Positions 8,497 through 50,714 of a DNA stretch of 64,000 bases are shown here, one piece after another; the first letter of the stretch is position 1; each line of letters starts with the position of its first letter. A program made the position numbers and the translations under genes. Source of the stretch: Monocercomonoides exilis PA203 (Eukaryota; Protista; Preaxostyla); assembly GCA_001643675.2 (NCBI GenBank), contig LSRY02000018.1, positions 682,001 through 746,000 of the forward strand. The letters are read 5' to 3'. A model generated the notes under the pieces. That model made no database searches, had not been told where the DNA came from, and was given only the letters and a program-made list of their open reading frames with translations.

Positions 8497-8547
8497 TTTA
8501 TTTTCGAAAAAAAAGTCAATAACAATTAAACGAAATGAAAAAAACAT

Positions 8548-21624: not shown

Positions 21625-21918
21625 CTTCTTTCTCTCGCCTTTCCTTTATTTTCAATTATTTTCGTTCCATTTTCGTCTGGTTGCATGGATTTGTTGTCTT
21701 TGCCTTTGCCTTTTCCTATTCCCATCCTCCACAACATTTTCCTCACTCTCTCTCCCAAGGCATTCACACACAATCCTCTTCAGTTCTATTGGCTGTTTCA
21801 ATTCAGAGCCGCTTGCATCGATTCTGCGGGAAACAATCTGTTTGGAAGTGGAAGGAATATTTGAGGGGGAAGGTGGCTTATGTGCCTCAGGTGCTAAAGT
21901 TAGAAAAAATAAAATGTG

Positions 21919-21951
<33 letters not shown>

Positions 21952-22092
21952 TTTGTTTGTTTGTTTGTTTGTTATTTAAAATGGCCTGTTGAGTTATTTC
22001 ATGGGGGAAAAAAGAAAGAAATACAAGTATCACAAAATTTAAAAAAAATTTTTTTGGTGATAGCACATAATTTTTTTTTGTTGTCATTTCAA

Positions 22093-23207: not shown

Positions 23208-23707
23208 TGAAGTGCTTTTTTCATCTCAATATTATTATTTCTATTACTATTATTTTGAATAAAGCTAATATTTCATGAACATATGATATTTATTTTATAA
23301 AATTTTCATTTCATTCAAAACATTCAAATTGTTTTTGAGTTTTTGAAAAAATAATCATCTTTTTCGAAATTCAACAATTTTTAACGAAGTCTTGTTTTAA
23401 ACAAATTATAAAATTCAGGGCAAAGGAATGAATGCATATTTCACCATCCCCAAGTTGAGCCATTTCAATGACAAACAGAATTGAATGAAATAAAACAAAG
23501 TTGAATCAAAAAGCAAGCACTGCTTCGCTCTGAACAATTTGGATCACAAACGCTAATATATGCAAAAGTTCTTTCAACAAAATTTTCCATTTTAAATGAA
23601 TTCTTTTCTTTTCCTGTTGTGTTGCTAATCCATTCAGAACAATTTTTCATGAAAGAATAAGAAAATGCAATAAAAACTTCGAATTATAAATATTTTTTCA
23701 GTCAGGT

Positions 23708-25735
23708 TTGAAATTCATCAATATCACGAGGATTGCTTTCCATAAGAACGCAACGCTGGCTTTTTCTGTTTCATCATTCTTTCATTCAGCTCACAATCCC
23801 ATTGAATGCGCCATCTTCTCTTCCTTCAAGATATCTTTCATCCACCAAACATGCTCTTTGCTAAATGTTGTTAAACTATATGTCGGAACTGAATCTCACG
23901 AAAAACACCTAGAAGAATGACTTCGCTTGATGCAAAAAGCCATCACTTTGAGTGATGCGAACAAGAAAAATACAAATGGTGGATCAAATCATAGAGGTGC
24001 GCTTCATGTTGAATGCAAAAATGCAAATCTCACAATCACTTCGTGCTCATTCAACAATTGTTCAAATGCCAATGATGGAGTGTCGTAATTGGTTCAAATT
24101 TTGTGAAATGTGTTCATTGCAAAATCCAATATCACAAGTTGCTCTGAGTTTCATGGAAGAACGAATTGCACAGCTTGGCCCTAATCCACTTCTGATTGGT
24201 TATTCTCGGAAAACAAAGTTGAAAATTGGAAAATAACAGGTGATTGTGGAACTGGTTGGCATTTCGTTCTCGACAACATGCCATTCGATTCAAAAGTTCA
24301 ATTTAAAAAATGTCAGCATATTACTAATATAGGCAGCAATGCGGCAGGGACAATAACGTTTCATTTTGCTCCACCAGAAAAATCGTTTCCATTTTTTCTT
24401 GAAAAGAATCAATTCATCAGTAAAATATTAGCAAATTCACAATATAATTGTGGTGCTGTGCTATGCCACACAACGATTTATAATTGGATAAGTGGAACAA
24501 AATTCATCTCGTTTTGTTTCTTCAATGGCAACTCTTCTGCATGTTACAGACAAAACAATATGTTATTCAGCAGAAGCACATCAAATCTCCATTCAACCGG
24601 CACATATCAATGAAATACACCAAAATGAGTGTGAAATAACAATATATCTTACAGTGAGACTTTCAACAGTTGGGTTCCCATCATCGCCCAGAGTTAACTT
24701 GTTGCCAGCAATGGAACTGATGCTGATGCCTGTGGCAGACCCCAACAAACCCCATGTGCCACCATCGAGTATGCCCTCAACGGCTTCATTTCCCTCCTCC
24801 AAGACTCCTCTCTCACCCTCCTCACCTCAACATTTGTTCCCATTCAAACACTCACTTTCAGCGCCATTGACACCAAACTCACTAGAAATGGAACAACTTC
24901 CACAGCCATAGCCTTCAGTGGTGCAACAATCAAACTCATATTTACAATCATCACAATCAACATCATCAACATCTTCTTCACCAGATCCATCTGCCTTGTC
25001 TGCCCTCTCCATCGCCCACAACTCCACAAACCCCATCACCCCCATTCTCTTCCACCTCTCCGAAAATTCCCCTTCCCTCAACCTCAACACAACCACCATC
25101 ACCGGAACAACCTCCATAACAATTAAAACTCCCCTCTTCTTCCTCACTGCTGGCTCCCTCGCCCTCAACCACACAGCAATCACCAGTCTCACCCTCAACA
25201 GCCAAAGCATCTTCCACCTCACCTCCCTCACCGCTCCACTCACCCTTAACTCATCCAACATCACCAATATCACCTCCACAGCCATCCCCGCCAGCTGCAT
25301 CCTCTCCTCTGCAACCACCCCTGCCCTCTCCCTCTCCCCCGCCAACTGCACCATGATCAACATCGACTCAGAACAGTTGAGCCAACAGACTCCCACCAAT
25401 GGCGGGTGCATCTCATTCGCCTCATCTGCCCCTGCCAACTCCTTTTCGGTAACACCACCTTTTCCACCTGCTCTGCGAGCGAGGATACAAGTTCTGGAGG
25501 AAGAGGCGGTGCTCTCATGATCGAGTACAAGGATGATTCAGAAGTGTCATCCACAACCTTTTCCATCACCAATATCGTGTTTTCAGCCAACAAGGCCAGT
25601 GTCGGAAGAGATATGTATTTTGTGTGCGAAACATTTGTCGCTTCTGTGAAGGAACCCTTGTTCGCCTTCATGGGAAACATCACTCAGAAAGACAATTCAG
25701 TTGTTGGACATGACAGAACAGAAGCAAATGGAATT
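23708..25735 (+). pseudogene. GGA-motif beta-helix-like surface protein pseudogene (paralogue of 14262-15400)
   Basis: Nucleotide similarity to the 14.3-15.4 kb gene (CGCTTCATGTTGAATGCA; GATGCCTGTGGCAGACCCCAACA). Ser/Thr-rich segment, NGGCI and RGGAL motifs, many frameshifts. Confidence 0.7.
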
Positions 25736-26859
25736 TCGATTAATAAATCTTTATCAACGGGCATGCAGCTGAATGAATGCGTGGAAAACATTCTTGGTAT
25801 CAAAGCAATGTATTTCTGGCCATCAAAGATGTCATGCAAGAGCACACAACGCGATGGGTCTTCTGAGGAAGGTGCAGATCGTAAGGCAGAAATCATTTCA
25901 TCATCTGACTTGTCGGTGAATTTACGTGCAAGTGACGACAAGGTCGAAGAAAGTTGGGGAGATGGCACACAAAATTGAAGAAAACATCTCATATGTGCAT
26001 TTGATGAAATCGGCATTGCTTGTCGGGCATTTATTCTCTTCTTTCATAGAATTTCTCTTCAAATATGTCTTTCCTCAAAAGCTCTTTCCTTCATCGGTTC
26101 ATTTTCTGCAACTTGTTGAAGATTTGTGACCTTGCGTAACCTGCCGAATGATATTTTGGAACTCATCCATTTCAATAAATCATTGTTCTAATACTCTTTC
26201 TTTTTGTCTGTGCCTCTTTCAGTTTCCTGATGAAAAGGCAAAATTGTCCTCCATTTTTATTGTACACGTTCCGATCAGCTTTTTCCAGCTCAAAATAATA
26301 TTCATTTCATTGACATATAATTTCGGTTAATATTCTGCGAATGTATGCATTAAAAATTCGTTTTACACTTCTGAATATAAACAATCCGCAAATCCTAAAA
26401 TTTTTTAAAAAAGAAGTTTCATGAGCACATAATATCAACATCATTATTATCTTCAAAATTAATTGGCCGAAAAATGAGAAGAATATAAAAAAAAAAAAAG
26501 AAAAGAAAAGAAAAAATGAATAATAAAATATATTATAATACAAAAAAATATGAGTGTGAAAGGAAATAAAATTATTAAATAGAAAAAAACAAAAGAATGA
26601 GATAAAAAAGAAGAAGAAGAAGAAGAAAAAGTGGAAGTTGAATGAGTAGAAAAAGGTGAATGAGAAGAAAAAGGTGAATGAAAAGGTGAAGAAGAAGGTG
26701 AAAAAGATGATGAAGGTGAAGAAGAAGAAGAAGGGCAAAAAAGAGAAGGAAAAGAATGATCTGTTTGACAAGAGAAGAATCCGCTATGACTGAACAGAGT
26801 TAGGCATTCCATCTCTTGTTTCTGAAAGAGAATTATCTGCGTTGTCCTGTCTAGCCAAT

Positions 26860-27858
26860 TAACAGTCCGTACAAACAAAGCGAGGCTTTGAAAATGGCAG
26901 GAGAGGAGAGCATGCTGCACAAGGGAGTGGAAAGACTGCTGGGAGCGGGGCAGAAAAATGGGGCTCGTCCTCTGCGTGCATTTCCAGCTGCTTCCTCAGC
27001 AACACCACAAATGTTCTTGGCGATAAATTTATTGAAGGACTGGCATCGATTCCCACAAGCGCCATCTCTAGCCGCACACTCATCACTTAGAACAGCATTG
27101 TTGCAGACAAAGAAAGCAAATTCGTCCCAATCATTCTTTCATCCTTCAATCTTCCTGTGATTATAATCTTCTTTTCCCCAAAATTGATTGTTGCTGCTTC
27201 GCCTCAATACTTCCCACCCAGCATTGTGATTGCAGAGCTCAGCTGTGCCATGCTCGTCCCGACTGCGTGCCTCATTATCCAGCACGGTGCTGCATCATTC
27301 ATCCCACATAGATCACTCACGTCACTTCCACTCACCACAACATATCAATCCTTCATCTCCTCCTTGCCAAATTCTTCCTTTCTGTGTACTGAACTGATCA
27401 CACGTTTGGATTTGAATAGTTGTGCGCATTGCACGCAACCTTGTTATCTGTGTTTGTGTTGTAACATTCATGAAATGGATTTTCTGAATTCAAATAGACG
27501 TTTTTGATATCGACATATTCAACATCATGCCCACGTGGATTGGTTGCATCTCTGAAGCTGCATTGGTGAAAAAATAAGAAGAAGCAATAGAGTTTATTGT
27601 CGGATGCTGTTGCTTGATTGGATAAAGATGCAATCCACCTCCCTCTTGCCATGCCGAGCATGAAATGAACTTAATGCTCCTCATTTTGAATGCAGCTGGA
27701 ACACTGTAACAATGCATCACTCCTCCACAATTTCTTGAAAGCGAGTATGAAGTGAATGAGCACTCAAACACGAAAGTGCTCTCCTCCTTGCCATTTTCAA
27801 TCCAATACAGATTAAATCTGAAAATATCAAATAAGAAATCCTTTTTCGTATAACGCAT
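26860..27858 (-). pseudogene. Fragmented Cys-rich GG-motif surface-protein-like pseudogene
   Basis: CGGVMHC, FISCSAWQEGGGLHL, SENPFHECY and SGSDVSDLCGMNDAAPC motifs in different frames. Confidence 0.55.
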
Positions 27859-28657
27859 TTCAAGTTTGATTTTAACTCAAATCCATGATTCTTTTCTTTG
27901 AATTATTTTATAGATTATGCTTTTTTTCCTCGCTTTATTAACGCTTCTTTTTTCATTGAGTAAAACCCTTCAAATATTTCATATAGTCTGCTCTAATAAA
28001 AAATTTCCTGACACCATCTTTTCCATTTGTAATATTTCATGTTATTCTATTCGATCTCTCAATCCTTTAGGCAAAATTTCTGATTTTCCTTTTTTATTGG
28101 ATACCAAAACTGTCAGATGTGATTTTTTCTGAATTGTTTATCTTTAAAATAATAATGTGCATTAATGGAGAAGTTGAAAATTTTTTGATACATTCATTTT
28201 GATGTAAAGGATCAGAAAAACTTTTATTGAAGGACTAACTGCAATTAACTTGGCATTTCATGAATCAAAATTTTTTATTCGAATAAACTGGTGTTTTCTG
28301 GAATAAACACTGATAATTCGAACTAACATTTTTATTTTAAGAAAACAAAAAAATTCCAATTCCATCAATTATATTATAAAATAATACGATCAAGTTGATG
28401 CGAAAAAAATTTGTTACACACATAATATTTTTTTTCCACTTTTTTCTTATGGGTTCTATTATTTTTTTATCAGTCAAAAAATATAAATAAGTGAATAATT
28501 TAATATAAAAATGAACGGTTTAATAAATAAAAACAAAGATATTGAAAATAGGTGCTCCGAACATGATTTCTGCCAACAAAATAGTAAATATAAGTTATAA
28601 ATAGAAAACAGTTTTTGCGGATGACAAGTAATTTTTCAATCTCAAACTTTTTTTCCC

Positions 28658-28677
28658 CTTCTTCTTCTTCTTCTTCT

Positions 28678-28717
<40 letters not shown>

Positions 28718-28760
28718 TTTGTTTGTTTGTTTGTTTGTTTGTTTGTTTGTTTGTTTGTTT
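28658..28760 (+). repeat. Compound microsatellite (TTC)n-(T)n-(TTTG)n; mirror ~43858-43961
   Basis: Seen directly. Confidence 0.9.
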
Positions 28761-29649
28761 ACATATCTGTAAAAATATTTTCAAAATTATCTTTTTGCTT
28801 CAAATTATGAGATCAGAAAAATGTTTCATAAATATTTCAAAAAAATTTTTTGACTTCATTAGAAACGAAACTAACAAAAACAAAACTCAATAGCTTTAAT
28901 ATTGTGATTTTTTAAGTTTTGTAATTTTTGAACCCGTATTTTTCTATCAAATATTACGGTTTGATAATTTTCTTCAAATATTTATAAATGAAGACTGAAA
29001 AGTTGCAACTCTTTTCATAGAAAATTTTTCATTAATATTATCTCGTTAATCTTCATTTTGAACTATTATCATGCTTTTTTCATTTTAATGAATAATGCCT
29101 CCTCAAATGAATTAAACCTTTGAAGAGTCAACAATCTGAATAAAGGAATGATTTCAAAAATTGTCACACATTTAGCGAATCAAAAAAATAAAATAGATTA
29201 AAAAAAAGAATGAAAGAAAAAAATGAAATTAAAAAAACATCCTTCTCAATGAATTATATAGTTGCGTAAAAAAATGTAAATAACACTTTGCTTGTGGGAA
29301 AAAAAAAGGAAAGAAAAGAAAATGAAAAAGAAAAGAAAAGAAAAGAAATAGAAATTGTAATAAGAAAAAATCTCATTCAAACGCAAATCTTCTAACCATA
29401 ACTTATATATTTTCATTTAATGAAAAGAAAAGAAAAACGTGAAAAAGCGTTCATAAATTCATCTTTAAGTATGAACTTGCATTATATTCTTATTTGTGTT
29501 TTTTGTATATTCAGATGATCTTCCAGACGATGTTTTAAGAATGTGTGGACAAATTCTTTATTGAAATTTATAATCGATTTAATGATTTATTTTTAAATAC
29601 TATTGATTATTGATGTAGAATTGTAACGAACTGCGACTGTTCATCTATA

Positions 29650-29891
29650 TGTCTAAATTTTTTTGAAAAGTTCCTTTTGTTGAATTTTCAAATAAAGAAA
29701 TAATTACATGTTTCGATCAAATTTCTGTTCTTTCTTATGAAACTTCACAAAATGGGAAATAATCACATTTTCAAGATTTTATTTTTATAACAACAAAATT
29801 TGGTGAGTGGAAACAGAAATTTGATCGAAACATGTAATTTTTATTCTTTTTGAAAATTCAACAAAAGGAACTTTTCAAAAAAATTTCGACA
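29650..29891. mobile_element. 242-bp hairpin MITE copy
   Basis: Differs from the central copy at only a few positions. TA on both sides, with flanks unrelated to those of the central copy. Confidence 0.9.
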
Positions 29892-29974
29892 TATATAAGA
29901 TTCAAAACAGAAAATTTAAAGAATCATATACTCATGAACAATTTTATGATATCATTAGAAATAATCAATATTTT

Positions 29975-32387
29975 TATTTAGCATGGTGCATATTTCCTGG
30001 AGTTTGTTTTTGTTGCAGATGTGAAATTGTTGAATTATAGAAATTTTTATAATCCTCTCTAAAACTCTTTCAATCTTATCATCGATCTCTCTTTTCTTTA
30101 AATCTTTTCTTTTCACAGCTTTCTTTTGAAATCATCTTTTATCTCAAGCAGCGTCTGCCTTCTCCTCCGTTTCCGCTCTTCGTGATAAAGCGTCTGTTTT
30201 TTGTCTCCAGTCGAGTTTTGTTCTTATGTTGTTCTGCTTCCTGACATTGACTCACTTTCAACTGCTACGCTTCTCCTTTTTTCTTTCCCTGGCTTTGTTT
30301 GGCAAGTGCTGTGGTTTCTTCTTGTTTCTTTTTCTGCAGCAATTTGAAGCGGTTTATTCGCAATGCTTGTTCGCTTCCCTCATCTTCTGTTGGCTGATTT
30401 GTTGAAGCTGCTACAAATTTGTTGTTTCCAATTTCTTTCACAGACGCATCCGCCACTTTCTTCATTCTTGACATAAACATAGTGAAAACATCTCCTTCTG
30501 TTGTTGTCTTTGTTGGCTCGGTTTGCATTTTCCACAACTGCTGCTGTCATTCGCATTTACTGTGCGCAGAATATATAATTAAGTTTGCTTCGCTTCTTCT
30601 TCGTCAAGATGCTCTGATTGCTCTTCCTCTTTGTGTTTTTCTTCTTCTTTCTCATTTTTCTGCTGTTTGTTATTGTGTGTTTCTTTACCAATAGCATCCT
30701 TTTTTTATTAATTCTACATTTCCAGATTTATCGAATTCAATTTCATCTTCTTCATTCTTCGATTTTCCTATTATCTTCTTCACTTTCTCGCCAAGTGGAT
30801 CGTCAATATCAATGTCTGATTCTTCTTCATCCAACCCGTCTTCCATGTACTCATCATTCGAAATGTACTGATTCTGCAATATCGTTGACAGCAGCCTTGA
30901 TATGTTAATGAGTGAATTCTGCTCCCAATTTTATTTTTATTATTTATTATTTTTATTATTTTTATGATTATTTTATTTTTTTGTTTGTAGCAATGATTAG
31001 AGAAATTTAACAAAGAGAACAAAAGATATTTTAAATAGATAAAAGAAAATCGGTGTCAATGACAGTTATTATGTTAAAAAAAACAAACCCTGATTAAGTC
31101 ATCAGTGTGAAATGCATCCAACTTTCCCAGAAATGTCAAGAACGTAAATGAAGGAGCAACACTGTTTCCACACAAAATAACAAATAATACATGAGTCAAC
31201 GAAGTATTTTTGGAGTAAAAGCAGTTTGGGTGAGGAGGTGGAAAAAAAAACAATATATATAAAATTAGAATTAGAATTAAATAAAACAAATTAAAAAAAT
31301 TAAAATAATTAAACAAATTAAACAAATATAATAAATATAATAAATGGGTGATTATTTTTGAAATCATATTTTTTCATAATAAAATTTCGCTTCGAAATAT
31401 TCACTTGAATATAAACTAAAGAACACTGAAAAGTGAAAATACTTATAAAAGATATCTTCTTCTTTATATTAACTTAAGAACTTTGTTCTTTAAACAGTTG
31501 TGATAGTTTTTGCATTTTATTTCAAAATCTTTTCACAATGACAAACAATCTTTGAAAAATCAACACCCCGAAAAATATATGATTTCAAAAATAATCACCC
31601 AAATATAATAAATATAATAAATAAAATTATTATAAAAATAAACTGAAAAGAAAGACAGAAAGAAAAAAGAAATATTAGAAATAAAATTGTTTAATAAGTT
31701 CCATTCTTCTCCACCCTCTGAACAAACAAGATTTGCTGATGTTATTGAAGACATAAGAGCTTCTAGCCCAATTGTTTTCGATGCAATTGCCTCTGGATAT
31801 ATTTTTTTTCTCAGTATCGTTGGAATTTTTCCAAGATAAATTTCATTCTCTGGATTTCCGCTTGTCTGAATCATTCCAGATAGCGCAGATTTGTTCTTGT
31901 CGGACTTGTGCTTTTCAGGCTTTGAAGGATCATATTCTTCACTGCTGTCATCCAAGTCGAACGAATCTTCTTCATCTTCTTCGTTATTGTTATCTTTTTC
32001 CTCGATTGCTTGTGATGACTTTTCGTCTTTTTGCTTAGAGGGGCGTAGTTGGTTGAACAGTGATGGCTTCTTCTGAGAGGAAAATGCTGATGACTCAGGA
32101 AGACCCAATTTCTCTCGCTCTTTCTGAACGCGCTTTTCTAGTCGCGCTTGTTCCACAGCATTTGTTAGCTCTATGAGGTGCCTTGATTCGTTTCTCGTCC
32201 AATTTGTTGACGCATCGGCTGTCATGCTTGCTAACACAGAATCCTTTTTTGCTGAAGGAAGCTTTCCTTTGAGCCTTGATGCGCGAGAATTTCGTAAAAC
32301 TGAAAACTTAGATTGTGCTGAAACGAAAGGTCTTCGTTCTGCGCCTCCGCTGAATCCTCTTCCCCAATTTTACCCAAATTGAGACAT
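29975..32387 (-). pseudogene. Diverged TIPIN-like paralogue, pseudogenised
   Basis: Homologous exons: RKKIYPEAIASKTIGLEALMSSITSANLVCSEGGE; SVAPSFTFLTFLGKLDAFHTDDLIR; NSLINISRLL. TAA at codon 6, first splice donor reads GA, frameshifted long acidic tail. 3' end approximate. Confidence 0.75.
31346..31600. mobile_element. ~255-bp MITE with GGGTGATTATTTTTGAAATCATAT TIRs, in intron 1 of the TIPIN-like pseudogene
   Basis: 24-bp perfect TIR, identical AT-rich direct repeat on both flanks, no ORF of note. Confidence 0.8.
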
Positions 32388-32621
32388 TTTCAAAAAAATA
32401 AAAAATTAATTACATGTCAAGCATATGTTTATTTCTCTCAAATTGTAAATGCTTTATAATGTTAAAATGAAATGCGAACCTTTTCTGTATTCAATTGCAG
32501 AAAGAGCAAATGCACACGATTTGATAAGATAAAAACAAGTCTCCCAAATGACTGATAAAAGAATGAATTTTCCTCTTTCAAAAATTTCCAAATTCAAATT
32601 AACTTTCATAAAATTTTAACG

Positions 32622-32674
<53 letters not shown>

Positions 32675-33241
32675 GCAGGGACTTGAATTTTCAAACAATC
32701 AATACAGTTCTCAAAGAAATCTGTATTCCTTTGCAAACATTTTACAGCATAGATATGAACATGTTGATAAAAAATAAAAAAGGAAATAAAGAAAAGGAGA
32801 AAAAGATCGAAAGAAAGCCATTCTGTCATAACAATAAAAATAAACAAATTTTAAATTCAAAAAGCATCAAACAATGAAAAATACATATATACAAGTAGAA
32901 GAAGAAATTTGTAAGCTTAATAAAAAACAAAGCTTTCTTTTTTTAAGAGTTTGTCAAAGAAGATTTCTCGCTTTTGGCTGACTCTTTTCTTTGGCCATGT
33001 AATAAACTGTCTATAGATAAGTAATAATCCTTTCACAACTTCAATGTTTTTTCAAGCAAGTGCTCCTCCCTCCATAAATATGATAATCTTCTGTTCAGAT
33101 TTTTGTGTTTTTTATCGAAATTTTGTTATTTTCGCTGTTTTTCTCTGCAAATCCCTTCACTCTCCCGTCTTTCGGGTGACTTCTGAGACCAAATTGCATT
33201 CTTAGCCAATCAAACTTCTGAACTCCAAAGCAAACAGCTGC

Positions 33242-33667
33242 CTATCTCTCTCCGCGCTCCCACATGTTTCTCAGATTTCTCCTCTTAGTTTCATTTTTAG
33301 GTGGATACAAAAAATACGCGGAAAGAAGCAATATAAAATAAAAAGAACTGAGACAAAGGCCAAAATGGAGGTTGATAGTGCAATCGAGCTTCAAAGGAAC
33401 CAGAATCATTACAGGAAATTTCACTAAGCATGCAAATCTAATGGATAAAGAAAATAATCCCATATCTTCAGGAGACAAGTAGCTGTTTTGTATTTGAAAG
33501 AACATCGTAATGATTAATGATGCAATGAAAAGGAAAGAGGATATTAAAAACAGAGAAAATACTGTTCTCCATATGAGTGACTGAACAAATTGAGATATTT
33601 TGGACAGATGGGGGAAAATATGGACTTTCAAGCTTTTTATGCGCATTGATTGAAATAATAGTTTCAC
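33242..33667 (-). pseudogene. Hydrophobic multi-TM ORF fragment (mirror at 38956-39381)
   Basis: 141-aa ORF with about 3 hydrophobic segments. Coding-like sequence continues beyond the TAG. Confidence 0.35.
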
Positions 33668-34107
33668 TTAAAACATTTTCAAACTTTATCAGATTTCAAA
33701 ATAATTTTGATTTTCGTATCTGTAATACAAGCATCATTCATATAATAACATTATGTTTTATGACCTCATATGTATTTCAAAAAATAATCCCATTTATTAC
33801 AAATTTTTTGATCACAAAAAGTTCATCAAAGGTGCATAATTTTTCAATGAAAATGCCTGAAGTCAAATATTTTACCCCAGATGGGCTTTTGGAGATCAAA
33901 AAGACAAAAGAATGAATCCAATACAAAATGTGAGACAGAAATAAAAGTGAAAAATAAAAAACAACATTTTCATAAAAGAAAACAAAATGAAAATGAAAAA
34001 AAGAAAAAGAAATAAGAAATAAGAAAAAGAATTAAAAAATGAATATTTAAATAAAGATATAAAGCAAGAAAAGAAAGAAAGAATAAAGAAAATAGCAAAC
34101 CATCTGC

Positions 34108-34545
34108 TTAAAGTGAAATAAGCGATATTGAAAGCATCGTAAAAGCAAAAAATATTATATCAATCATCAATAAAATGAATAAGGCCAATGGATTAACAAT
34201 ATCTCCCTGGGCACTGAGCAATAGAACAGTCAAGCCAACTGCAATTGAATTAAACGGCCATGAAAATGAAAACGCCGAAACGCCTTCCCAAAAATAATAA
34301 AAGTCCAGAGCCGGAAGCGTCAGAACAACACAACATGCAAAAATGATACCTGCGATGATTGCTTCTCCATTCACAAGTGCAGCAATAGAAGTGTAAATGA
34401 AATAAGATCCCAACAGCAGGTCAGAAAACGTCAAAGAATCTGTGAATGATCCTTTAACTTCATTTCCGTTCGAATTAGTCTGAAAAACGATTTCGCAATT
34501 CCTCGAGAAAGCACCCAATCCCAAAACAAACAATAGTATTAGCAT
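34108..34545 (-). CDS. Small predicted membrane protein (145 aa; signal-like N-terminus, 3-4 hydrophobic segments)
   Basis: ATG-initiated ORF, more GC-rich than its flanks, with hydrophobic stretches. Confidence 0.55.
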   Translation of the reverse strand: MLILLFVLGLGAFSRNCEIVFQTNSNGNEVKGSFTDSLTFSDLLLGSYFIYTSIAALVNGEAIIAGIIFACCVVLTLPALDFYYFWEGVSAFSFSWPFNSIAVGLTVLLLSAQGDIVNPLALFILLMIDIIFFAFTMLSISLISL

Positions 34546-34656
34546 TATTTTCGCGAATAAACATATTTTATAAAAAGAACAATCAAATGATATTCAATTC
34601 TTATTCTCCTGGAAACTTGAGGGAAATCTCGCTTTTCCACCAACCTTTTGTAAATA

Positions 34657-35804
34657 TAGGGTAGTCCTTTATATTTTGCACAAAGAATAAAAAATGGGTA
34701 AATAAAAAATGAATTATCAAAATTTTTTGATATTACAGAGTTTTGCACTCTGATTATTACGAATGCCGAACAAATATATGAAAAACTGCAAATTGCGAAT
34801 GGTTGAAAACTTCCGGATATCATAACTATTCGTTCATGGAACATTAGAATTCAAAGGCGAGAAGAAATTGATAGGAGACATTATAATCACGGCAGGCCAA
34901 CTAATGAAGTGTTGATAAAGAAGATACAACAAGCAGTGGAAGAAAATCCTCATATTAGCTCCAGAGCGTTGGCAGAACAATTTAGTGTTGGAAAAACGAC
35001 AATTTTAAGGATTCTTCATGAAAAATTACATTTCCATTCTTACAAAATTAGGTGGGTGCCGTACGCACTGAATGAGGATCAGAAAAATCCGCGTTCAAAC
35101 TGGCTTGCTATTATTGGAGAAATTGCGAGATTCACAGAAAAGAAATTTTGAAGCGCTGATAATAGGAGATGAATCCTTTTTCCACAGAAGGAATAATTTC
35201 GAATGCGAATGGAGAAAAGAAAAATCTGAAGTGTCAACCGTAGCAAATTACACTTATTCAGATAAGAAATTCATGTACACGATTTTCATTTCAGTTCATT
35301 AGTTGTTTTTTCTTAATATTCTACCAGAAAAAACAAAAATGAATGCAGAGTATTTCGTAAATTCGATATTAAAGCCCATTTGCCATATTCAAATAGACAT
35401 TTCTTCCGTTTCTCCTATGGATTTTTTTATTCGCTTCGATAATGTTCGTCCGCACACAGCGGCAATATCAAAGATCTTTGCGGAGGAGCATCATTTAAAT
35501 ATTCTTCCGCATCCTCCTTATTCTCCTGATGTTGTACCATGTGATTTTTTCCTCTTCGGCTACATAAAGCAGGCTCTGAAAAGGGAAAAAATATCTAATT
35601 ATGAAGAATTAGAATTAGAAATAAGAAATATTCTTCATTCAATATCTTCAGACATGATTATTCGTGCCTTTGAAAGTTGGATAAAGCTATTGGAATTTAT
35701 GACAACTCATATCGGTGAATATTTTTATGATTGAATTTTTTTTTTTCTCATTAATTTTTTAACCATATCAAAATTTTTTAACAAAAATATAAAGGACCAC
35801 CCTT
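34657..35804 (+). mobile_element. Mariner element, defective (left arm)
   Basis: Imperfect ~20-bp TIRs AGGGT(A/G)GTCCTTTATATTTT enclose a mariner transposase. Exact ends are uncertain by a few bp. Confidence 0.85.
34709..35734 (+). pseudogene. Mariner DD34D transposase pseudogene
   Basis: GRP, WVPY, IIGDES, FDNVRPHTA and PHPPYSPDVVPCDF motifs with 34 residues between D2 and D3. In-frame TGA and TAG stops, plus an A-run frameshift in this copy. Confidence 0.92.
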
Positions 35805-36188
35805 CACTACAAGAAAAAGATTCCATTCGTCAAAAATTGGACAAAAAAATTTCAATAAATGATAAAATATTTCAACAATTCCGTATAGAAACCGAAATGC
35901 ATCCTCCCATCCCTTAAGACTGATTCCATATCTGTAACTCTCCTTCAAGTCTTTTCCAGAACAAGGATGAAATTTTGAAACATTATGAAACGCGCATTTC
36001 GGAAGAAGACAAATCTTGTGGATGAAACGAATTATTGTCCTGCACCATATTTCTGTTGTTCTGCATGAGATTAGCAAATATATAATTGAAATAAAATAGA
36101 AATATCGTTTTTTTGCAAAAATGAAAATCAAACTTTTCCATTTTTGTTAGAAGATAAAACCGACGACTTACTCGCGAAAGCGATAATA

Positions 36189-36430
36189 TGTCTAAATTTT
36201 TTTGAAAAGTTCCTTTTGTTGAATTTTCAAATAAAGAAATAATTACATGTTTCGATCAAATTTCTGTTCTTTCTTATGAAACTTCACAAAATGGGAAATA
36301 ATCACATTTTCAAGATTTTATTTTTATAACAACAAAACTTGGTGAGTGGAAACAGAAATTTGATCGAAACATGTAATTTTTATTCTTTTTTAAAATTCAA
36401 CAAAAGGAACTTTTCAAAAAAATTTAGACA
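36189..36430. mobile_element. 242-bp hairpin MITE forming the palindrome centre
   Basis: About 80-bp terminal inverted repeats, first 39 bp perfect (TGTCTAAATTTTTTTGAAAAGTTCCTTTTGTTGAATTTT). Flanked by TA. Asymmetric interior. Near-identical copy at 29650-29891. Confidence 0.9.
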
Positions 36431-36814
36431 TATTATCGCTTTCGCGAGTAAGTCGTCGGTTTTATCTTCTAACAAAAATGGAAAAGTTTGATTTTCATTT
36501 TTGCAAAAAAACGATATTTCTATTTTATTTCAATTATATATTTGCTAATCTCATGCAGAACAACAGAAATATGGTGCAGGACAATAATTCGTTTCATCCA
36601 CAAGATTTGTCTTCTTCCGAAATGCGCGTTTCATAATGTTTCAAAATTTCATCCTTGTTCTGGAAAAGACTTGAAGGAGAGTTACAGATATGGAATCAGT
36701 CTTAAGGGATGGGAGGATGCATTTCGGTTTCTATACGGAATTGTTGAAATATTTTATCATTTATTGAAATTTTTTTGTCCAATTTTTGACGAATGGAATC
36801 TTTTTCTTGTAGTG

Positions 36815-37965
36815 AAGGGTGGTCCTTTATATTTTTGTTAAAAAATTTTGATATGGTTAAAAAATTAATGAGAAAAAAAAAAATTCAATCATAAAAATAT
36901 TCACCGATATGAGTTGTCATAAATTCCAATAGCTTTATCCAACTTTCAAAGGCACGAATAATCATGTCTGAAGATATTGAATGAAGAATATTTCTTATTT
37001 CTAATTCTAATTCTTCATAATTAGATATTTTTTCCCTTTTCAGAGCCTGCTTTATGTAGCCGAAGAGGAAAAAATCACATGGTACAACATCAGGAGAATA
37101 AGGAGGATGCGGAAGAATATTTAAATGATGCTCCTCCGCAAAGATCTTTGATATTGCCGCTGTGTGCGGACGAACATTATCGAAGCGAATAAAAAAATCC
37201 ATAGGAGAAACGGAAGAAATGTCTATTTGAATATGGCAAATGGGCTTTAATATCGAATTTACGAAATACTCTGCATTCATTTTTGTTTTTTCTGGTAGAA
37301 TATTAAGAAAAAACAACTAATGAACTGAAATGAAAATCGTGTACATGAATTTCTTATCTGAATAAGTGTAATTTGCTACGGTTGACACTTCAGATTTTTC
37401 TTTTCTCCATTCGCATTCGAAATTATTCCTTCTGTGGAAAAAGGATTCATCTCCTATTATCAGCGCTTCAAAATTTCTTTTCTGTGAATCTCGCAATTTC
37501 TCCAATAATAGCAAGCCAGTTTGAACGCGGATTTTTTTCTGATCCTCATTCAGTGCGTACGGCACCCACCTAATTTTGTAAGAATGGAAATGTAATTTTT
37601 CATGAAGAATCCTTAAAATTGTCGTTTTTCCAACACTAAATTGTTCTGCCAACGCTCTGGAGCTAATATGAGGATTTTCTTCCACTGCTTGTTGTATCTT
37701 CTTTATCAACACTTCATTAGTTGGCCTGCCGTGATTATAATGTCTCCTATCAATTTCTTCTCGCCTTTGAATTCTAATGTTCCATGAACGAATAGTTATG
37801 ATATCCGGAAGTTTTCAACCATTCGCAATTTGCAGTTTTTCATATATTTGTTCGGCATTCGTAATAATCAGAGTGCAAAACTCTGTAATATCAAAAAAAT
37901 TTTGATAATTCATTTTTTATTTACCCATTTTTTATTCTTTGTGCAAAATATAAAGGACTACCCTA
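36815..37965 (-). mobile_element. Mariner element, defective (mirror copy)
   Basis: Reverse complement of 34657-35804. Confidence 0.85.
36885..37913 (-). pseudogene. Mariner DD34D transposase pseudogene (mirror)
   Basis: ORFs 37317..37712 and 36885..37316 are in frame and separated by one TAG. A further TGA lies in the N-terminal HTH region. Confidence 0.92.
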
Positions 37966-38077
37966 TATTTACAAAAGGTTGGTGGAAAAGCGAGATTTCC
38001 CTCAAGTTTCCAGGAGAATAAGAATTGAATATCATTTGATTGTTCTTTTTTATAAAATATGTTTATTCGCGAAAATA

Positions 38078-38515
38078 ATGCTAATACTATTGTTTGTTTT
38101 GGGATTGGGTGCTTTCTCGAGGAATTGCGAAATCGTTTTTCAGACTAATTCGAACGGAAATGAAGTTAAAGGATCATTCACAGATTCTTTGACGTTTTCT
38201 GACCTGCTGTTGGGATCTTATTTCATTTACACTTCTATTGCTGCACTTGTGAATGGAGAAGCAATCATCGCAGGTATCATTTTTGCATGTTGTGTTGTTC
38301 TGACGCTTCCGGCTCTGGACTTTTATTATTTTTGGGAAGGCGTTTCGGCGTTTTCATTTTCATGGCCGTTTAATTCAATTGCAGTTGGCTTGACTGTTCT
38401 ATTGCTCAGTGCCCAGGGAGATATTGTTAATCCATTGGCCTTATTCATTTTATTGATGATTGATATAATATTTTTTGCTTTTACGATGCTTTCAATATCG
38501 CTTATTTCACTTTAA
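38078..38515 (+). CDS. Small predicted membrane protein (mirror)
   Basis: Identical translation to 34108..34545. Confidence 0.55.
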   Translation: MLILLFVLGLGAFSRNCEIVFQTNSNGNEVKGSFTDSLTFSDLLLGSYFIYTSIAALVNGEAIIAGIIFACCVVLTLPALDFYYFWEGVSAFSFSWPFNSIAVGLTVLLLSAQGDIVNPLALFILLMIDIIFFAFTMLSISLISL

Positions 38516-39951
38516 GCAGATGGTTTGCTATTTTCTTTATTCTTTCTTTCTTTTCTTGCTTTATATCTTTATTTAAATATTCATTTTTTAATTCTTTTTC
38601 TTATTTCTTATTTCTTTTTCTTTTTTTCATTTTCATTTTGTTTTCTTTTATGAAAATGTTGTTTTTTATTTTTCACTTTTATTTCTGTCTCACATTTTGT
38701 ATTGGATTCATTCTTTTGTCTTTTTGATCTCCAAAAGCCCATCTGGGGTAAAATATTTGACTTCAGGCATTTTCATTGAAAAATTATGCACCTTTGATGA
38801 ACTTTTTGTGATCAAAAAATTTGTAATAAATGGGATTATTTTTTGAAATACATATGAGGTCATAAAACATAATGTTATTATATGAATGATGCTTGTATTA
38901 CAGATACGAAAATCAAAATTATTTTGAAATCTGATAAAGTTTGAAAATGTTTTAAGTGAAACTATTATTTCAATCAATGCGCATAAAAAGCTTGAAAGTC
39001 CATATTTTCCCCCATCTGTCCAAAATATCTCAATTTGTTCAGTCACTCATATGGAGAACAGTATTTTCTCTGTTTTTAATATCCTCTTTCCTTTTCATTG
39101 CATCATTAATCATTACGATGTTCTTTCAAATACAAAACAGCTACTTGTCTCCTGAAGATATGGGATTATTTTCTTTATCCATTAGATTTGCATGCTTAGT
39201 GAAATTTCCTGTAATGATTCTGGTTCCTTTGAAGCTCGATTGCACTATCAACCTCCATTTTGGCCTTTGTCTCAGTTCTTTTTATTTTATATTGCTTCTT
39301 TCCGCGTATTTTTTGTATCCACCTAAAAATGAAACTAAGAGGAGAAATCTGAGAAACATGTGGGAGCGCGGAGAGAGATAGGCAGCTGTTTGCTTTGGAG
39401 TTCAGAAGTTTGATTGGCTAAGAATGCAATTTGGTCTCAGAAGTCACCCGAAAGACGGGAGAGTGAAGGGATTTGCAGAGAAAAACAGCGAAAATAACAA
39501 AATTTCGATAAAAAACACAAAAATCTGAACAGAAGATTATCATATTTATGGAGGGAGGAGCACTTGCTTGAAAAAACATTGAAGTTGTGAAAGGATTATT
39601 ACTTATCTATAGACAGTTTATTACATGGCCAAAGAAAAGAGTCAGCCAAAAGCGAGAAATCTTCTTTGACAAACTCTTAAAAAAAGAAAGCTTTGTTTTT
39701 TATTAAGCTTACAAATTTCTTCTTCTACTTGTATATATGTATTTTTCATTGTTTGATGCTTTTTGAATTTAAAATTTGTTTATTTTTATTGTTATGACAG
39801 AATGGCTTTCTTTCGATCTTTTTTCTCCTTTTCTTTATTTCCTTTTTTTTATTTTTTATCAACATGTTCATATCTATGCTGTAAAATGTTTGCAAAGGAA
39901 TACAGATTTCTTTGAGAACTGTATTGATTGTTTGAAAATTCAAGTCCCTGC

Positions 39952-39992
<41 letters not shown>

Positions 39993-40225
39993 CGTTAAAA
40001 TTTTATGAAAGTTAATTTGAATTTGGAAATTTTTGAAAGAGGAAAATTCATTCTTTTATCAGTCATTTGGGAGACTTGTTTTTATCTTATCAAATCGTGT
40101 GCATTTGCTCTTTCTGCAATTGAATACAGAAAAGGTTCGCATTTCATTTTAACATTATAAAGCATTTACAATTTGAGAGAAATAAACATATGCTTGACAT
40201 GTAATTAATTTTTATTTTTTTGAAA

Positions 40226-42640
40226 ATGTCTCAATTTGGGTAAAATTGGGGAAGAGGATTCAGCGGAGGCGCAGAACGAAGACCTTTCGTTTCAGCACAA
40301 TCTAAGTTTTCAGTTTTACGAAATTCTCGCGCATCAAGGCTCAAAGGAAAGCTTCCTTCAGCAAAAAAGGATTCTGTGTTAGCAAGCATGACAGCCGATG
40401 CGTCAACAAATTGGACGAGAAACGAATCAAGGCACCTCATAGAGCTAACAAATGCTGTGGAACAAGCGCGACTAGAAAAGCGCGTTCAGAAAGAGCGAGA
40501 GAAATTGGGTCTTCCTGAGTCATCAGCATTTTCCTCTCAGAAGAAGCCATCACTGTTCAACCAACTACGCCCCTCTAAGCAAAAAGACGAAAAGTCATCA
40601 CAAGCAATCGAGGAAAAAGATAACAATAACGAAGAAGATGAAGAAGATTCGTTCGACTTGGATGACAGCAGTGAAGAATATGATCCTTCAAAGCCTGAAA
40701 AGCACAAGTCCGACAAGAACAAATCTGCGCTATCTGGAATGATTCAGACAAGCGGAAATCCAGAGAATGAAATTTATCTTGGAAAAATTCCAACGATACT
40801 GAGAAAAAAAATATATCCAGAGGCAATTGCATCGAAAACAATTGGGCTAGAAGCTCTTATGTCTTCAATAACATCAGCAAATCTTGTTTGTTCAGAGGGT
40901 GGAGAAGAATGGAACTTATTAAACAATTTTATTTCTAATATTTCTTTTTTCTTTCTGTCTTTCTTTTCAGTTTATTTTTATAATAATTTTATTTATTATA
41001 TTTATTATATTTGGGTGATTATTTTTGAAATCATATATTTTTTCGGGGTGTTGATTTTTCAAAGATTGTTTGTCATTGTGAAAAGATTTTGAAATAAAAT
41101 GCAAAAACTATCACAACTGTTTAAAGAACAAAGTTCTTAAGTTAATATAAAGAAGAAGATATCTTTTATAAGTATTTTCACTTTTCAGTGTTCTTTAGTT
41201 TATATTCAAGTGAATATTTCGAAGCGAAATTTTATTATGAAAAAATATGATTTCAAAAATAATCACCCATTTATTATATTTATTATATTTGTTTAATTTG
41301 TTTAATTATTTTAATTTTTTTAATTTGTTTTATTTAATTCTAATTCTAATTTTATATATATTGTTTTTTTTTCCACCTCCTCACCCAAACTGCTTTTACT
41401 CCAAAAATACTTCGTTGACTCATGTATTATTTGTTATTTTGTGTGGAAACAGTGTTGCTCCTTCATTTACGTTCTTGACATTTCTGGGAAAGTTGGATGC
41501 ATTTCACACTGATGACTTAATCAGGGTTTGTTTTTTTTAACATAATAACTGTCATTGACACCGATTTTCTTTTATCTATTTAAAATATCTTTTGTTCTCT
41601 TTGTTAAATTTCTCTAATCATTGCTACAAACAAAAAAATAAAATAATCATAAAAATAATAAAAATAATAAATAATAAAAATAAAATTGGGAGCAGAATTC
41701 ACTCATTAACATATCAAGGCTGCTGTCAACGATATTGCAGAATCAGTACATTTCGAATGATGAGTACATGGAAGACGGGTTGGATGAAGAAGAATCAGAC
41801 ATTGATATTGACGATCCACTTGGCGAGAAAGTGAAGAAGATAATAGGAAAATCGAAGAATGAAGAAGATGAAATTGAATTCGATAAATCTGGAAATGTAG
41901 AATTAATAAAAAAAGGATGCTATTGGTAAAGAAACACACAATAACAAACAGCAGAAAAATGAGAAAGAAGAAGAAAAACACAAAGAGGAAGAGCAATCAG
42001 AGCATCTTGACGAAGAAGAAGCGAAGCAAACTTAATTATATATTCTGCGCACAGTAAATGCGAATGACAGCAGCAGTTGTGGAAAATGCAAACCGAGCCA
42101 ACAAAGACAACAACAGAAGGAGATGTTTTCACTATGTTTATGTCAAGAATGAAGAAAGTGGCGGATGCGTCTGTGAAAGAAATTGGAAACAACAAATTTG
42201 TAGCAGCTTCAACAAATCAGCCAACAGAAGATGAGGGAAGCGAACAAGCATTGCGAATAAACCGCTTCAAATTGCTGCAGAAAAAGAAACAAGAAGAAAC
42301 CACAGCACTTGCCAAACAAAGCCAGGGAAAGAAAAAAGGAGAAGCGTAGCAGTTGAAAGTGAGTCAATGTCAGGAAGCAGAACAACATAAGAACAAAACT
42401 CGACTGGAGACAAAAAACAGACGCTTTATCACGAAGAGCGGAAACGGAGGAGAAGGCAGACGCTGCTTGAGATAAAAGATGATTTCAAAAGAAAGCTGTG
42501 AAAAGAAAAGATTTAAAGAAAAGAGAGATCGATGATAAGATTGAAAGAGTTTTAGAGAGGATTATAAAAATTTCTATAATTCAACAATTTCACATCTGCA
42601 ACAAAAACAAACTCCAGGAAATATGCACCATGCTAAATAA
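40226..42640 (+). pseudogene. Diverged TIPIN-like paralogue, pseudogenised (mirror)
   Basis: Reverse complement of 29975-32387, starting ATG TCT CAA TTT GGG TAA. Confidence 0.75.
41013..41268. mobile_element. GGG-ended MITE (mirror copy)
   Basis: TIRs at 41013 and 41268. ATTTATTATATTTATTATATTT on both flanks (40991-41012, 41269-41290). Confidence 0.8.
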
Positions 42641-42722
42641 AAATATTGATTATTTCTAATGATATCATAAAATTGTTCATGAGTATATGATTCTTTAAAT
42701 TTTCTGTTTTGAATCTTATATA

Positions 42723-42964
42723 TGTCGAAATTTTTTTGAAAAGTTCCTTTTGTTGAATTTTCAAAAAGAATAAAAATTACATGTTTCGATCAAATTTCTG
42801 TTTCCACTCACCAAATTTTGTTGTTATAAAAATAAAATCTTGAAAATGTGATTATTTCCCATTTTGTGAAGTTTCATAAGAAAGAACAGAAATTTGATCG
42901 AAACATGTAATTATTTCTTTATTTGAAAATTCAACAAAAGGAACTTTTCAAAAAAATTTAGACA
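42723..42964. mobile_element. 242-bp hairpin MITE copy (mirror of 29650-29891)
   Basis: Reverse complement of 29650-29891, TA flanks. Confidence 0.9.
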
Positions 42965-43900
42965 TATAGATGAACAGTCGCAGTTCGTTACAATTCTACA
43001 TCAATAATCAATAGTATTTAAAAATAAATCATTAAATCGATTATAAATTTCAATAAAGAATTTGTCCACACATTCTTAAAACATCGTCTGGAAGATCATC
43101 TGAATATACAAAAAACACAAATAAGAATATAATGCAAGTTCATACTTAAAGATGAATTTATGAACGCTTTTTCACGTTTTTCTTTTCTTTTCATTAAATG
43201 AAAATATATAAGTTATGGTTAGAAGATTTGCGTTTGAATGAGATTTTTTCTTATTACAATTTCTATTTCTTTTCTTTTCTTTTCTTTTTCATTTTCTTTT
43301 CTTTCCTTTTTTTTTCCCACAAGCAAAGTGTTATTTACATTTTTTTACGCAACTATATAATTCATTGAGAAGGATGTTTTTTTAATTTCATTTTTTTCTT
43401 TCATTCTTTTTTTTAATCTATTTTATTTTTTTGATTCGCTAAATGTGTGACAATTTTTGAAATCATTCCTTTATTCAGATTGTTGACTCTTCAAAGGTTT
43501 AATTCATTTGAGGAGGCATTATTCATTAAAATGAAAAAAGCATGATAATAGTTCAAAATGAAGATTAACGAGATAATATTAATGAAAAATTTTCTATGAA
43601 AAGAGTTGCAACTTTTCAGTCTTCATTTATAAATATTTGAAGAAAATTATCAAACCGTAATATTTGATAGAAAAAATACGGGTTCAAAAATTACAAAACT
43701 TAAAAAAATCACAATATTAAAGCTATTGAGTTTTGTTTTTGTTAGTTTCGTTTCTAATGAAGTCAAAAAAATTTTTTTGAAATATTTATGAAACATTTTT
43801 CTGATCTCATAATTTGAAGCAAAAAGATAATTTTGAAAATATTTTTTACAGATATGTAAACAAACAAACAAACAAACAAACAAACAAACAAACAAACAAA

Positions 43901-43933
<33 letters not shown>

Positions 43934-44761
43934 AGAAGAAGAAGAAGAAGAAGAAGAAGAAGGGGAAAAAAAGTTTGAGATTGAAAAATTACTTGTCATC
44001 CGCAAAAACTGTTTTCTATTTATAACTTATATTTACTATTTTGTTGGCAGAAATCATGTTCGGAGCACCTATTTTCAATATCTTTGTTTTTATTTATTAA
44101 ACCGTTCATTTTTATATTAAATTATTCACTTATTTATATTTTTTGACTGATAAAAAAATAATAGAACCCATAAGAAAAAAGTGGAAAAAAAATATTATGT
44201 GTGTAACAAATTTTTTTCGCATCAACTTGATCGTATTATTTTATAATATAATTGATGGAATTGGAATTTTTTTGTTTTCTTAAAATAAAAATGTTAGTTC
44301 GAATTATCAGTGTTTATTCCAGAAAACACCAGTTTATTCGAATAAAAAATTTTGATTCATGAAATGCCAAGTTAATTGCAGTTAGTCCTTCAATAAAAGT
44401 TTTTCTGATCCTTTACATCAAAATGAATGTATCAAAAAATTTTCAACTTCTCCATTAATGCACATTATTATTTTAAAGATAAACAATTCAGAAAAAATCA
44501 CATCTGACAGTTTTGGTATCCAATAAAAAAGGAAAATCAGAAATTTTGCCTAAAGGATTGAGAGATCGAATAGAATAACATGAAATATTACAAATGGAAA
44601 AGATGGTGTCAGGAAATTTTTTATTAGAGCAGACTATATGAAATATTTGAAGGGTTTTACTCAATGAAAAAAGAAGCGTTAATAAAGCGAGGAAAAAAAG
44701 CATAATCTATAAAATAATTCAAAGAAAAGAATCATGGATTTGAGTTAAAATCAAACTTGAA

Positions 44762-45760
44762 ATGCGTTATACGAAAAAGGATTTCTTATTTGATATTTTC
44801 AGATTTAATCTGTATTGGATTGAAAATGGCAAGGAGGAGAGCACTTTCGTGTTTGAGTGCTCATTCACTTCATACTCGCTTTCAAGAAATTGTGGAGGAG
44901 TGATGCATTGTTACAGTGTTCCAGCTGCATTCAAAATGAGGAGCATTAAGTTCATTTCATGCTCGGCATGGCAAGAGGGAGGTGGATTGCATCTTTATCC
45001 AATCAAGCAACAGCATCCGACAATAAACTCTATTGCTTCTTCTTATTTTTTCACCAATGCAGCTTCAGAGATGCAACCAATCCACGTGGGCATGATGTTG
45101 AATATGTCGATATCAAAAACGTCTATTTGAATTCAGAAAATCCATTTCATGAATGTTACAACACAAACACAGATAACAAGGTTGCGTGCAATGCGCACAA
45201 CTATTCAAATCCAAACGTGTGATCAGTTCAGTACACAGAAAGGAAGAATTTGGCAAGGAGGAGATGAAGGATTGATATGTTGTGGTGAGTGGAAGTGACG
45301 TGAGTGATCTATGTGGGATGAATGATGCAGCACCGTGCTGGATAATGAGGCACGCAGTCGGGACGAGCATGGCACAGCTGAGCTCTGCAATCACAATGCT
45401 GGGTGGGAAGTATTGAGGCGAAGCAGCAACAATCAATTTTGGGGAAAAGAAGATTATAATCACAGGAAGATTGAAGGATGAAAGAATGATTGGGACGAAT
45501 TTGCTTTCTTTGTCTGCAACAATGCTGTTCTAAGTGATGAGTGTGCGGCTAGAGATGGCGCTTGTGGGAATCGATGCCAGTCCTTCAATAAATTTATCGC
45601 CAAGAACATTTGTGGTGTTGCTGAGGAAGCAGCTGGAAATGCACGCAGAGGACGAGCCCCATTTTTCTGCCCCGCTCCCAGCAGTCTTTCCACTCCCTTG
45701 TGCAGCATGCTCTCCTCTCCTGCCATTTTCAAAGCCTCGCTTTGTTTGTACGGACTGTTA
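44762..45760 (+). pseudogene. Mirror of 26860-27858
   Basis: Mirror ORFs. Confidence 0.55.
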
Positions 45761-46886
45761 ATTGGCTAGACAGGACAACGCAGATAATTCTCTTTCAGAA
45801 ACAAGAGATGGAATGCCTAACTCTGTTCAGTCATAGCGGATTCTTCTCTTGTCAAACAGATCATTCTTTTCCTTCTCTTTTTTGCCCTTCTTCTTCTTCT
45901 TCACCTTCATCATCTTTTTCACCTTCTTCTTCACCTTTTCATTCACCTTTTTCTTCTCATTCACCTTTTTCTACTCATTCAACTTCCACTTTTTCTTCTT
46001 CTTCTTCTTCTTTTTTATCTCATTCTTTTGTTTTTTTCTATTTAATAATTTTATTTCCTTTCACACTCATATTTTTTTGTATTATAATATATTTTATTAT
46101 TCATTTTTTCTTTTCTTTTCTTTTTTTTTTTTTATATTCTTCTCATTTTTCGGCCAATTAATTTTGAAGATAATAATGATGTTGATATTATGTGCTCATG
46201 AAACTTCTTTTTTAAAAAATTTTAGGATTTGCGGATTGTTTATATTCAGAAGTGTAAAACGAATTTTTAATGCATACATTCGCAGAATATTAACCGAAAT
46301 TATATGTCAATGAAATGAATATTATTTTGAGCTGGAAAAAGCTGATCGGAACGTGTACAATAAAAATGGAGGACAATTTTGCCTTTTTCATCAGGAAACT
46401 GAAAGAGGCACAGACAAAAAAGAAAGAGTATTAGAACAATGATTTATTGAAATGGATGAGTTCCAAAATATCATTCGGCAGGTTACGCAAGGTCACAAAT
46501 CTTCAACAAGTTGCAGAAAATGAACCGATGAAGGAAAGAGCTTTTGAGGAAAGACATATTTGAAGAGAAATTCTATGAAAGAAGAGAATAAATGCCCGAC
46601 AAGCAATGCCGATTTCATCAAATGCACATATGAGATGTTTTCTTCAATTTTGTGTGCCATCTCCCCAACTTTCTTCGACCTTGTCGTCACTTGCACGTAA
46701 ATTCACCGACAAGTCAGATGATGAAATGATTTCTGCCTTACGATCTGCACCTTCCTCAGAAGACCCATCGCGTTGTGTGCTCTTGCATGACATCTTTGAT
46801 GGCCAGAAATACATTGCTTTGATACCAAGAATGTTTTCCACGCATTCATTCAGCTGCATGCCCGTTGATAAAGATTTATTAATCGA

Positions 46887-48913: not shown

Positions 48914-49413
48914 ACCTGACTGAAAAAATATTTATAATTCGAAGTTTTTATTGCATTTTCTTATTCTTTCATGAAAAATTGTTCTGAATGGATTAGCAAC
49001 ACAACAGGAAAAGAAAAGAATTCATTTAAAATGGAAAATTTTGTTGAAAGAACTTTTGCATATATTAGCGTTTGTGATCCAAATTGTTCAGAGCGAAGCA
49101 GTGCTTGCTTTTTGATTCAACTTTGTTTTATTTCATTCAATTCTGTTTGTCATTGAAATGGCTCAACTTGGGGATGGTGAAATATGCATTCATTCCTTTG
49201 CCCTGAATTTTATAATTTGTTTAAAACAAGACTTCGTTAAAAATTGTTGAATTTCGAAAAAGATGATTATTTTTTCAAAAACTCAAAAACAATTTGAATG
49301 TTTTGAATGAAATGAAAATTTTATAAAATAAATATCATATGTTCATGAAATATTAGCTTTATTCAAAATAATAGTAATAGAAATAATAATATTGAGATGA
49401 AAAAAGCACTTCA

Positions 49414-50528: not shown

Positions 50529-50665
50529 TTGAAATGACAACAAAAAAAAATTATGTGCTATCACCAAAAAAATTTTTTTTAAATTTTGTGATACTTGTAT
50601 TTCTTTCTTTTTTCCCCCATGAAATAACTCAACAGGCCATTTTAAATAACAAACAAACAAACAAA

Positions 50666-50714
<49 letters not shown>

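Follow-up and report, generated by a model that had tools for sequence, protein, structure and literature searches.

A 44-kb Palindrome in Monocercomonoides exilis With a MITE at Its Axis: A Probable Foldback Inversion

The Locus and Its Genes

The DNA analyzed comprises bases 682,001–746,000 of contig LSRY02000018.1 from the Monocercomonoides exilis assembly GCA_001643675.2 (64,000 nt, hereafter the window) and is dominated by one large palindrome of 44 kb. A BLAST search of the window against itself gave a single minus-strand match (14322–58295, 99.5%). The palindrome lies in the middle of a contig of 1,597,598 bp, and its left and right flanks differ from each other. The features of the locus are collected in Table 1. 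The assembly was made with Canu from nanopore ligation libraries having a read N50 of 8.9 kb and was polished with PCR-free MiSeq reads; the published methods describe no genome amplification step, and palindromes or inversions are not mentioned in the genome paper (PMC8767320). For comparison we used four public read sets (a single sample from one study; 2016 is the date of two runs), which were compared to the right outer boundary, and, as a wider sample for elements, eight other loci of the genome (170 kb in total).

Table 1. Features of the palindrome and its surroundings (positions in the window)
Feature	Position	Strand	Remarks
Older MITE copy	8255..8496	+	78%; TT/TT flanks; nested in IS630/Tc1-type element
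Truncated beta-helix-like family member	14261..15226	-	spans left outer boundary; weak Beta_helix match
Left arm	14326..36188	+	21,863 bp; presumed original copy
Mirror of junction stretch	14326..14362	-	in left-arm gene fragment
Swi3/TIPIN-domain gene	22093..23207	+	in left arm
Young MITE copy	29650..29891	+	independent; 98.8%; TA/TA flanks; off-axis
Duplicated gene, left copy	30265..32225	-	310 aa; NCBI protein name MONOS_14324c2
MITE at axis	36189..36430	+	242 bp; TG...CA ends; ~80-bp TIRs; asymmetric core; TA on both sides
Outer 39 bp of left TIR	36189..36227	+	pairs perfectly with right end; left limit of strand-switch zone
Outer 39 bp of right TIR	36392..36430	-	putative snap-back primer end
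Right arm	36431..58291	-	21,861 bp; inverted copy
Duplicated gene, right copy	40388..42349	+	protein identical to left copy
Mirror of the 29650 MITE copy	42723..42964	-	carried in right arm
Junction stretch	58255..58291	+	37 bp; near-invariant in four family members; copy switches paralogue at its end
Diverged paralogue tail	58292..58430	+	in-frame, beta-helix-like family; single-copy right flank starts here

A protein look-up with the 310-aa product of the duplicated gene returned the two arm copies only. The suffix c2 in its name may indicate that one gene of an older assembly was mapped onto two copies. The mirror of the Swi3/TIPIN gene (~49414–50528) shows no sequence difference, and no gene has been called there. 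The 310-aa protein (P0005) is 32% similar to the Swi3/TIPIN gene product across 165 residues. Another observation concerns an arm gene that is called with 121 aa in one arm (L003:16257–16622) and with 153 aa in the other (L004:16248–16709), a discrepancy that probably stems from a homopolymer error in the assembly. An exact look-up of one arm ORF gave no match.

The axis lies at 36309.5, and from there the symmetry of the flanks begins with the first base beyond the central element on both sides and is perfect over 1,106 bp. Between the arms there are 28 indels, of which homopolymer runs account for 26 and whole tandem units for the other 2, and 3 mismatches within those repeats; outside the repeats we found no substitution in 21.8 kb. 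Judged from the sequence, this pattern fits a very recent duplication and an artefact alike, and the read sets were therefore compared across the right outer boundary (see below).

The Element at the Axis

The sequence-only reading of this DNA had held that the palindrome axis coincides to the base with a dispersed 242-bp element. The position of the axis, the start of the symmetry at the first outside base and the further copies in the window bear this out. The window contains three independent copies of 242 bp, whose flanks differ, and a 20-mer of the TIR is counted 8 times where 0.02 are expected. The chance that the axis would fall within 2 bp of the centre of a copy of the element is about 4 × 10−4. 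The axis copy folds with −79.9 kcal/mol (z = −17.7 relative to shuffled sequences) and has no ORF of 60 or more aa; being short, non-coding and bounded by TIRs, the element is by its sequence characters a MITE. In Rfam the only matches were to microRNA hairpins below threshold, of the kind that any long hairpin gives.

A target-site duplication of 2 bp is the sole length that fits all three independent copies (TA, TA, TT), the copies being few and their flanks AT-rich; one of 4 bp fits one copy only and was ruled out. With respect to the Stowaway-like (Tc1/mariner-derived) MITEs, which would have a strict TA target and ends in common with a Tc1/mariner element, one copy has TT/TT flanks and the ends are unlike those of both DDE elements in the window. 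No autonomous partner with the same ends was found in the window or in the 170 kb sampled elsewhere, and no further young copy in the eight other loci; among metagenome contigs the TIR had no exact match. One of the sampled loci (L005:1135–1378) harbors a remote relative, 66–68% identical and of the same length class, with TG...CA ends and TA flanks.

Of the two DDE elements in the window, one is a DNA transposon of the IS630/Tc1 type (7521–9921) with TA flanks and TIRs of ~65 bp, in which the old MITE copy is nested and whose HTH and DDE_3 frames are broken (8548–9810, minus strand). The other is a decayed mariner-like element (34657–35804, and its mirror) about 385 bp from the axis, which was copied together with the arm; its frames are broken, and its ends show no relationship to those of the MITE.

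Within the first 80 positions, the TIRs of the axis copy mismatch at positions 40, 44, 46, 48, 49 and 52 only. It had been claimed that the inner TIR mismatches and the asymmetric core match the independent copy at 29650. This is correct for positions 44, 46, 48, 49 and 52, which both copies have in common, and incorrect for position 40: the axis copy alone has a mismatch at this site, which falls in a T run, and the copies at 29650 and 8255 are paired there. The copy at 29650 carries a TIR mismatch of its own at position 5. Because the mismatches from 44 to 52 are shared and that at 40 is private, a comparison of the copies places the strand switch in the outer 39–43 bp of the TIR: the limit of 39 bp given in the sequence-only reading, of which the outer TIR was confirmed, becomes 43 bp if position 40 is an assembly error.

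The two young copies differ at 3 of 242 sites (1.2%), and the arms at none in 21.8 kb (<0.014%). On these figures the duplication looks far more recent than the insertion of the MITE, provided that neither conversion between the arms nor errors of assembly have masked the real divergence.

The Outer Junction

At either end the palindrome stops inside a gene belonging to a large beta-helix-like family. As seen in the assembly, the secondary junction lies in homologous sequence, and the switch from one paralogue to the other is in frame. Beyond the junction the left side agrees with two paralogues in 22–25 of 30 bases, which is as close as the arm itself, and the right side, in the same reading frame, is more distant (17–20 of 30 bases). 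Because the continuation of the left arm stays as paralogue-like as the arm, we infer from the sequence that the right arm was copied, inverted, from the left one and that copying was ended by a switch into an oppositely oriented paralogue. At neither 58291 nor 14326 is there an end of an element, and thus no element end joined to a new target as in alternative transposition.

The contigs covering 58266/58267–58601 are at single-copy depth, and for this reason the right flank was probably captured rather than duplicated. These flank contigs enter the arm by 25–26 bases, fewer than the 31 required for bridging, and the stretch they enter is common to many paralogues. The second half of the event, in which a paralogue at 58291 would have provided an in-frame rescue, was absent from the sequence-only reading.

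The right flank has two further peculiarities. Positions 58426–61474 are an 85–90% segmental paralogue of two blocks on LSRY02000033.1 (L001 and L002), of which the L002 block, too, is preceded by a gene of the junction family, and positions 61440–62024 are occupied by an array of ~117 copies of a 5-bp unit.

Copy Number

In the four runs the depths of arm and right flank were 81/42, 189/107, 6.8/4.3 and 5.9/3.9 (ratios of 1.93, 1.76, 1.60 and 1.54), given as length-weighted word depth of exactly matching contigs without variant letters, a measure of which the tool itself warns that it is no copy number. The lower two ratios come from shallow runs, in which the ratio would shrink if rare words were lost. 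Read contigs covered 2.9 kb of the arm, with no variant letters listed there. Because the arm was 1.5–1.9 times deeper than the right flank in all four read sets, the duplication is probably real and the flank single-copy; the evidence, which stems from one sample and covers the right boundary, is indicative. In the same indicative sense the gain in copy number at that boundary is confined to the arm. The head-to-head joint at the axis is read from the assembly: no read contig bridges the axis MITE, since contigs built from short words cannot cross or phase a multi-copy element of 242 bp.

Origin of the Palindrome

We consider it rather probable that the structure is a real and very recent interstitial foldback inversion. 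Besides the hairpin at the axis and the depth ratios, the two identical copies of one older gene model, the mid-contig position between unlike flanks, published methods without an amplification step and the in-register junction speak for it. In the event that we propose, a break or a stalled fork at or just to the right of the MITE would have yielded a 3′ single strand. Within this strand the TIRs would have paired, any tail would have been trimmed to the stem and the left flank copied backwards, by which the core of the MITE and its inner mismatches would have been kept as the spacer; an axis on a pre-existing inverted repeat with the spacer retained is indeed what the assembly displays. Some 22 kb farther out the growing end would have paired, via the conserved stretch of 37 bp, with a paralogue of opposite orientation located on the distal fragment, so that the rest of the chromosome would have been recaptured once and the sequence between the MITE and that paralogue lost. 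In this event the MITE would be a passive hairpin substrate and the gene family the means of rescue.

Snap-back of the TIR followed by synthesis had already been suggested from the sequence. With a duplication that looks real and a strand switch in the outer TIR, snap-back is also in our view the simplest cause. In yeast any tail left unpaired is removed as far as the stem, and the efficiency drops as the break moves away from the repeat (PMC10622511). The base-exact axis is for the first reason a sign of where pairing took place rather than of where the break fell, and for the second a nearby break is favored, for which a cut by transposase is not required.

The same structure could also have been reached by another route or with the two junctions formed in the reverse order, which would leave the same product. 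A distal end, once broken, could have entered the inverted paralogue by strand invasion, been extended over 22 kb in the direction of the MITE and been sealed there by pairing with the TIR. Alternatively, a fork could have changed template at the TIR with no break at all. The MITE would be the site of closure in the first case and the switch point of the fork in the second, and in neither a snap-back primer. Homology is present at both junctions, and fork-based priming at inverted repeats is one of the models for the amplicons of Leishmania (PMC4028189). This route would, however, have to start in a short homeologous stretch and to end at one specific homology of 39–43 bp, and we regard it as fairly unlikely.

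It is quite improbable, in our judgement, that the segment is truly double and the head-to-head joint at the MITE an error of assembly, by which a segment was skipped or two loci were joined. An arm exceeds the read N50 (8.9 kb) in length, the axis is without bridging reads, and nanopore data do contain foldback artefact reads (PMC12338684). Against such a misjoin stand that the two copies would need to break off at one identical base of a MITE, that artefact reads would have to outnumber the true ones and that the protein look-up gave the two arm copies only.

Transposases of the cut-and-paste type would, by cutting at the right end of the MITE, leave a flush primer. The sequence-only reading had considered it possible that the break was a cut made by transposase at one MITE end, after which the freed 3′ end snapped back. 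The flush primer and the similarity of the two copies (98.8%), which points to a fairly young MITE family, speak for such a cut, as does the higher efficiency of breaks near the repeat in yeast (PMC10622511). Nevertheless the claim could not be upheld and such a cut is very improbable: the axis would settle on the stem whatever the position of the break, a transposase with these ends was found neither in the window nor in the 170 kb (the two DDE elements of the window have other ends and are broken), the MITE looks by its divergence much older than the duplication, and the sequence requires no cut.

That a single-copy segment was mirrored by fold-back reads is extremely improbable, since the arm contigs exceed the flank in depth in four of four runs, the flanks differ and the right flank is the coherent tail of a paralogue, although the arms differ, as expected from one pool of reads, by homopolymer and tandem-repeat indels only.

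Comparison With Known Systems

The foldback inversion that we favor has its closest counterpart in yeast. Li et al. reported that the commonest product terminates in a homologous gene of opposite orientation, located on the distal fragment, and that this fragment is not duplicated (Li et al., 2020; PMC7467729). The layout of these class-1 rearrangements (foldback inversion GCRs, ura3-52/URA3 single-strand annealing class) is the same as here, with a hairpin-primed inverted duplication and a captured, unduplicated distal end. They were obtained under selection in engineered strains, mostly sae2 or mre11 mutants, with short stems and near-identical homology, whereas the structure in M. exilis is spontaneous and fixed and has a transposon stem of 80 bp and a short homeologous junction.

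Al-Zain et al. found that, after a break near an inverted repeat, the strand pairs with itself, loses its unpaired flap, is filled in and forms a second junction, for which repeats or gene families such as PAU are used (Al-Zain et al., 2023; PMC10622511). Inverted duplications induced by a break at natural inverted repeats resemble the present one in each of these steps. In yeast, rescue was mostly by non-reciprocal translocation and mismatches in the stem were corrected; in M. exilis the flank is single-copy, and the five inner mismatches shared with another MITE copy were kept.

Among protists, the linear amplicons that Leishmania forms at SIDER inverted repeats are alike in that transposon-derived repeats serve as the platform for inverted duplication (Ubeda et al., 2014; PMC4028189). 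There the repeats are pairs of separate retroposon remnants and the products are extrachromosomal and were shown to be selectable, whereas in M. exilis both repeats come from a single element and the duplicated segment sits in the chromosome.

The rDNA palindrome of Tetrahymena also has a short inverted repeat at its centre; its formation is programmed, uses a dedicated breakage sequence and yields a telomere-capped minichromosome. The palindrome of M. exilis is no such capped, free product and lies instead interstitially in a contig of 1.6 Mb. In alternative transposition of Ac/Ds and hybrid insertion of P elements, transposon ends are linked to inverted duplications; both require transposase and join an end of the element to a new target. 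In M. exilis, however, both flanks mirror each other to the base and the far junction is without a transposon end. The structure is thus neither a product of alternative transposition nor a programmed palindrome. By analogy it would have arisen as do the yeast foldback inversions that single-strand annealing resolves; every defining feature that could be tested is present, and we are probably dealing with a real duplication that arose by a known mechanism on a new natural substrate. Our literature search, which left most subscription journals outside, found no description of a MITE as the axis of a palindrome.

Foldback inversions are known mainly from screens with mutant yeast and from tumors. 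Here a probable one is found that is spontaneous and fixed in a culturable eukaryote, with both junctions readable and with a single MITE serving as the complete hairpin substrate. A bolder idea, which we hold to be rather doubtful, is that MITEs with long TIRs are a standing, genome-wide source of gene duplication: they would start inverted duplications, large gene families of surface proteins would rescue these to give in-frame chimeras, and the cell would tolerate near-perfect palindromes of 20–60 kb; in the strongest form an active transposase would start the events. If the pattern were general, the genome would directly test which inverted repeats seed duplications in nature, and the large gene families of M. 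exilis would have a route for growth and recombination.

Two other inverted structures came to light in the sampled loci. The search for other pairs of duplicated genes had as its only result an older inverted gene pair (L005:9627–13808), 88.7% identical, with a spacer of 1.37 kb and a centre without a MITE. The second is a fold-back element of 1 kb (L008:5394–6411) that is 92% self-symmetric and has arms of ~490 bp.
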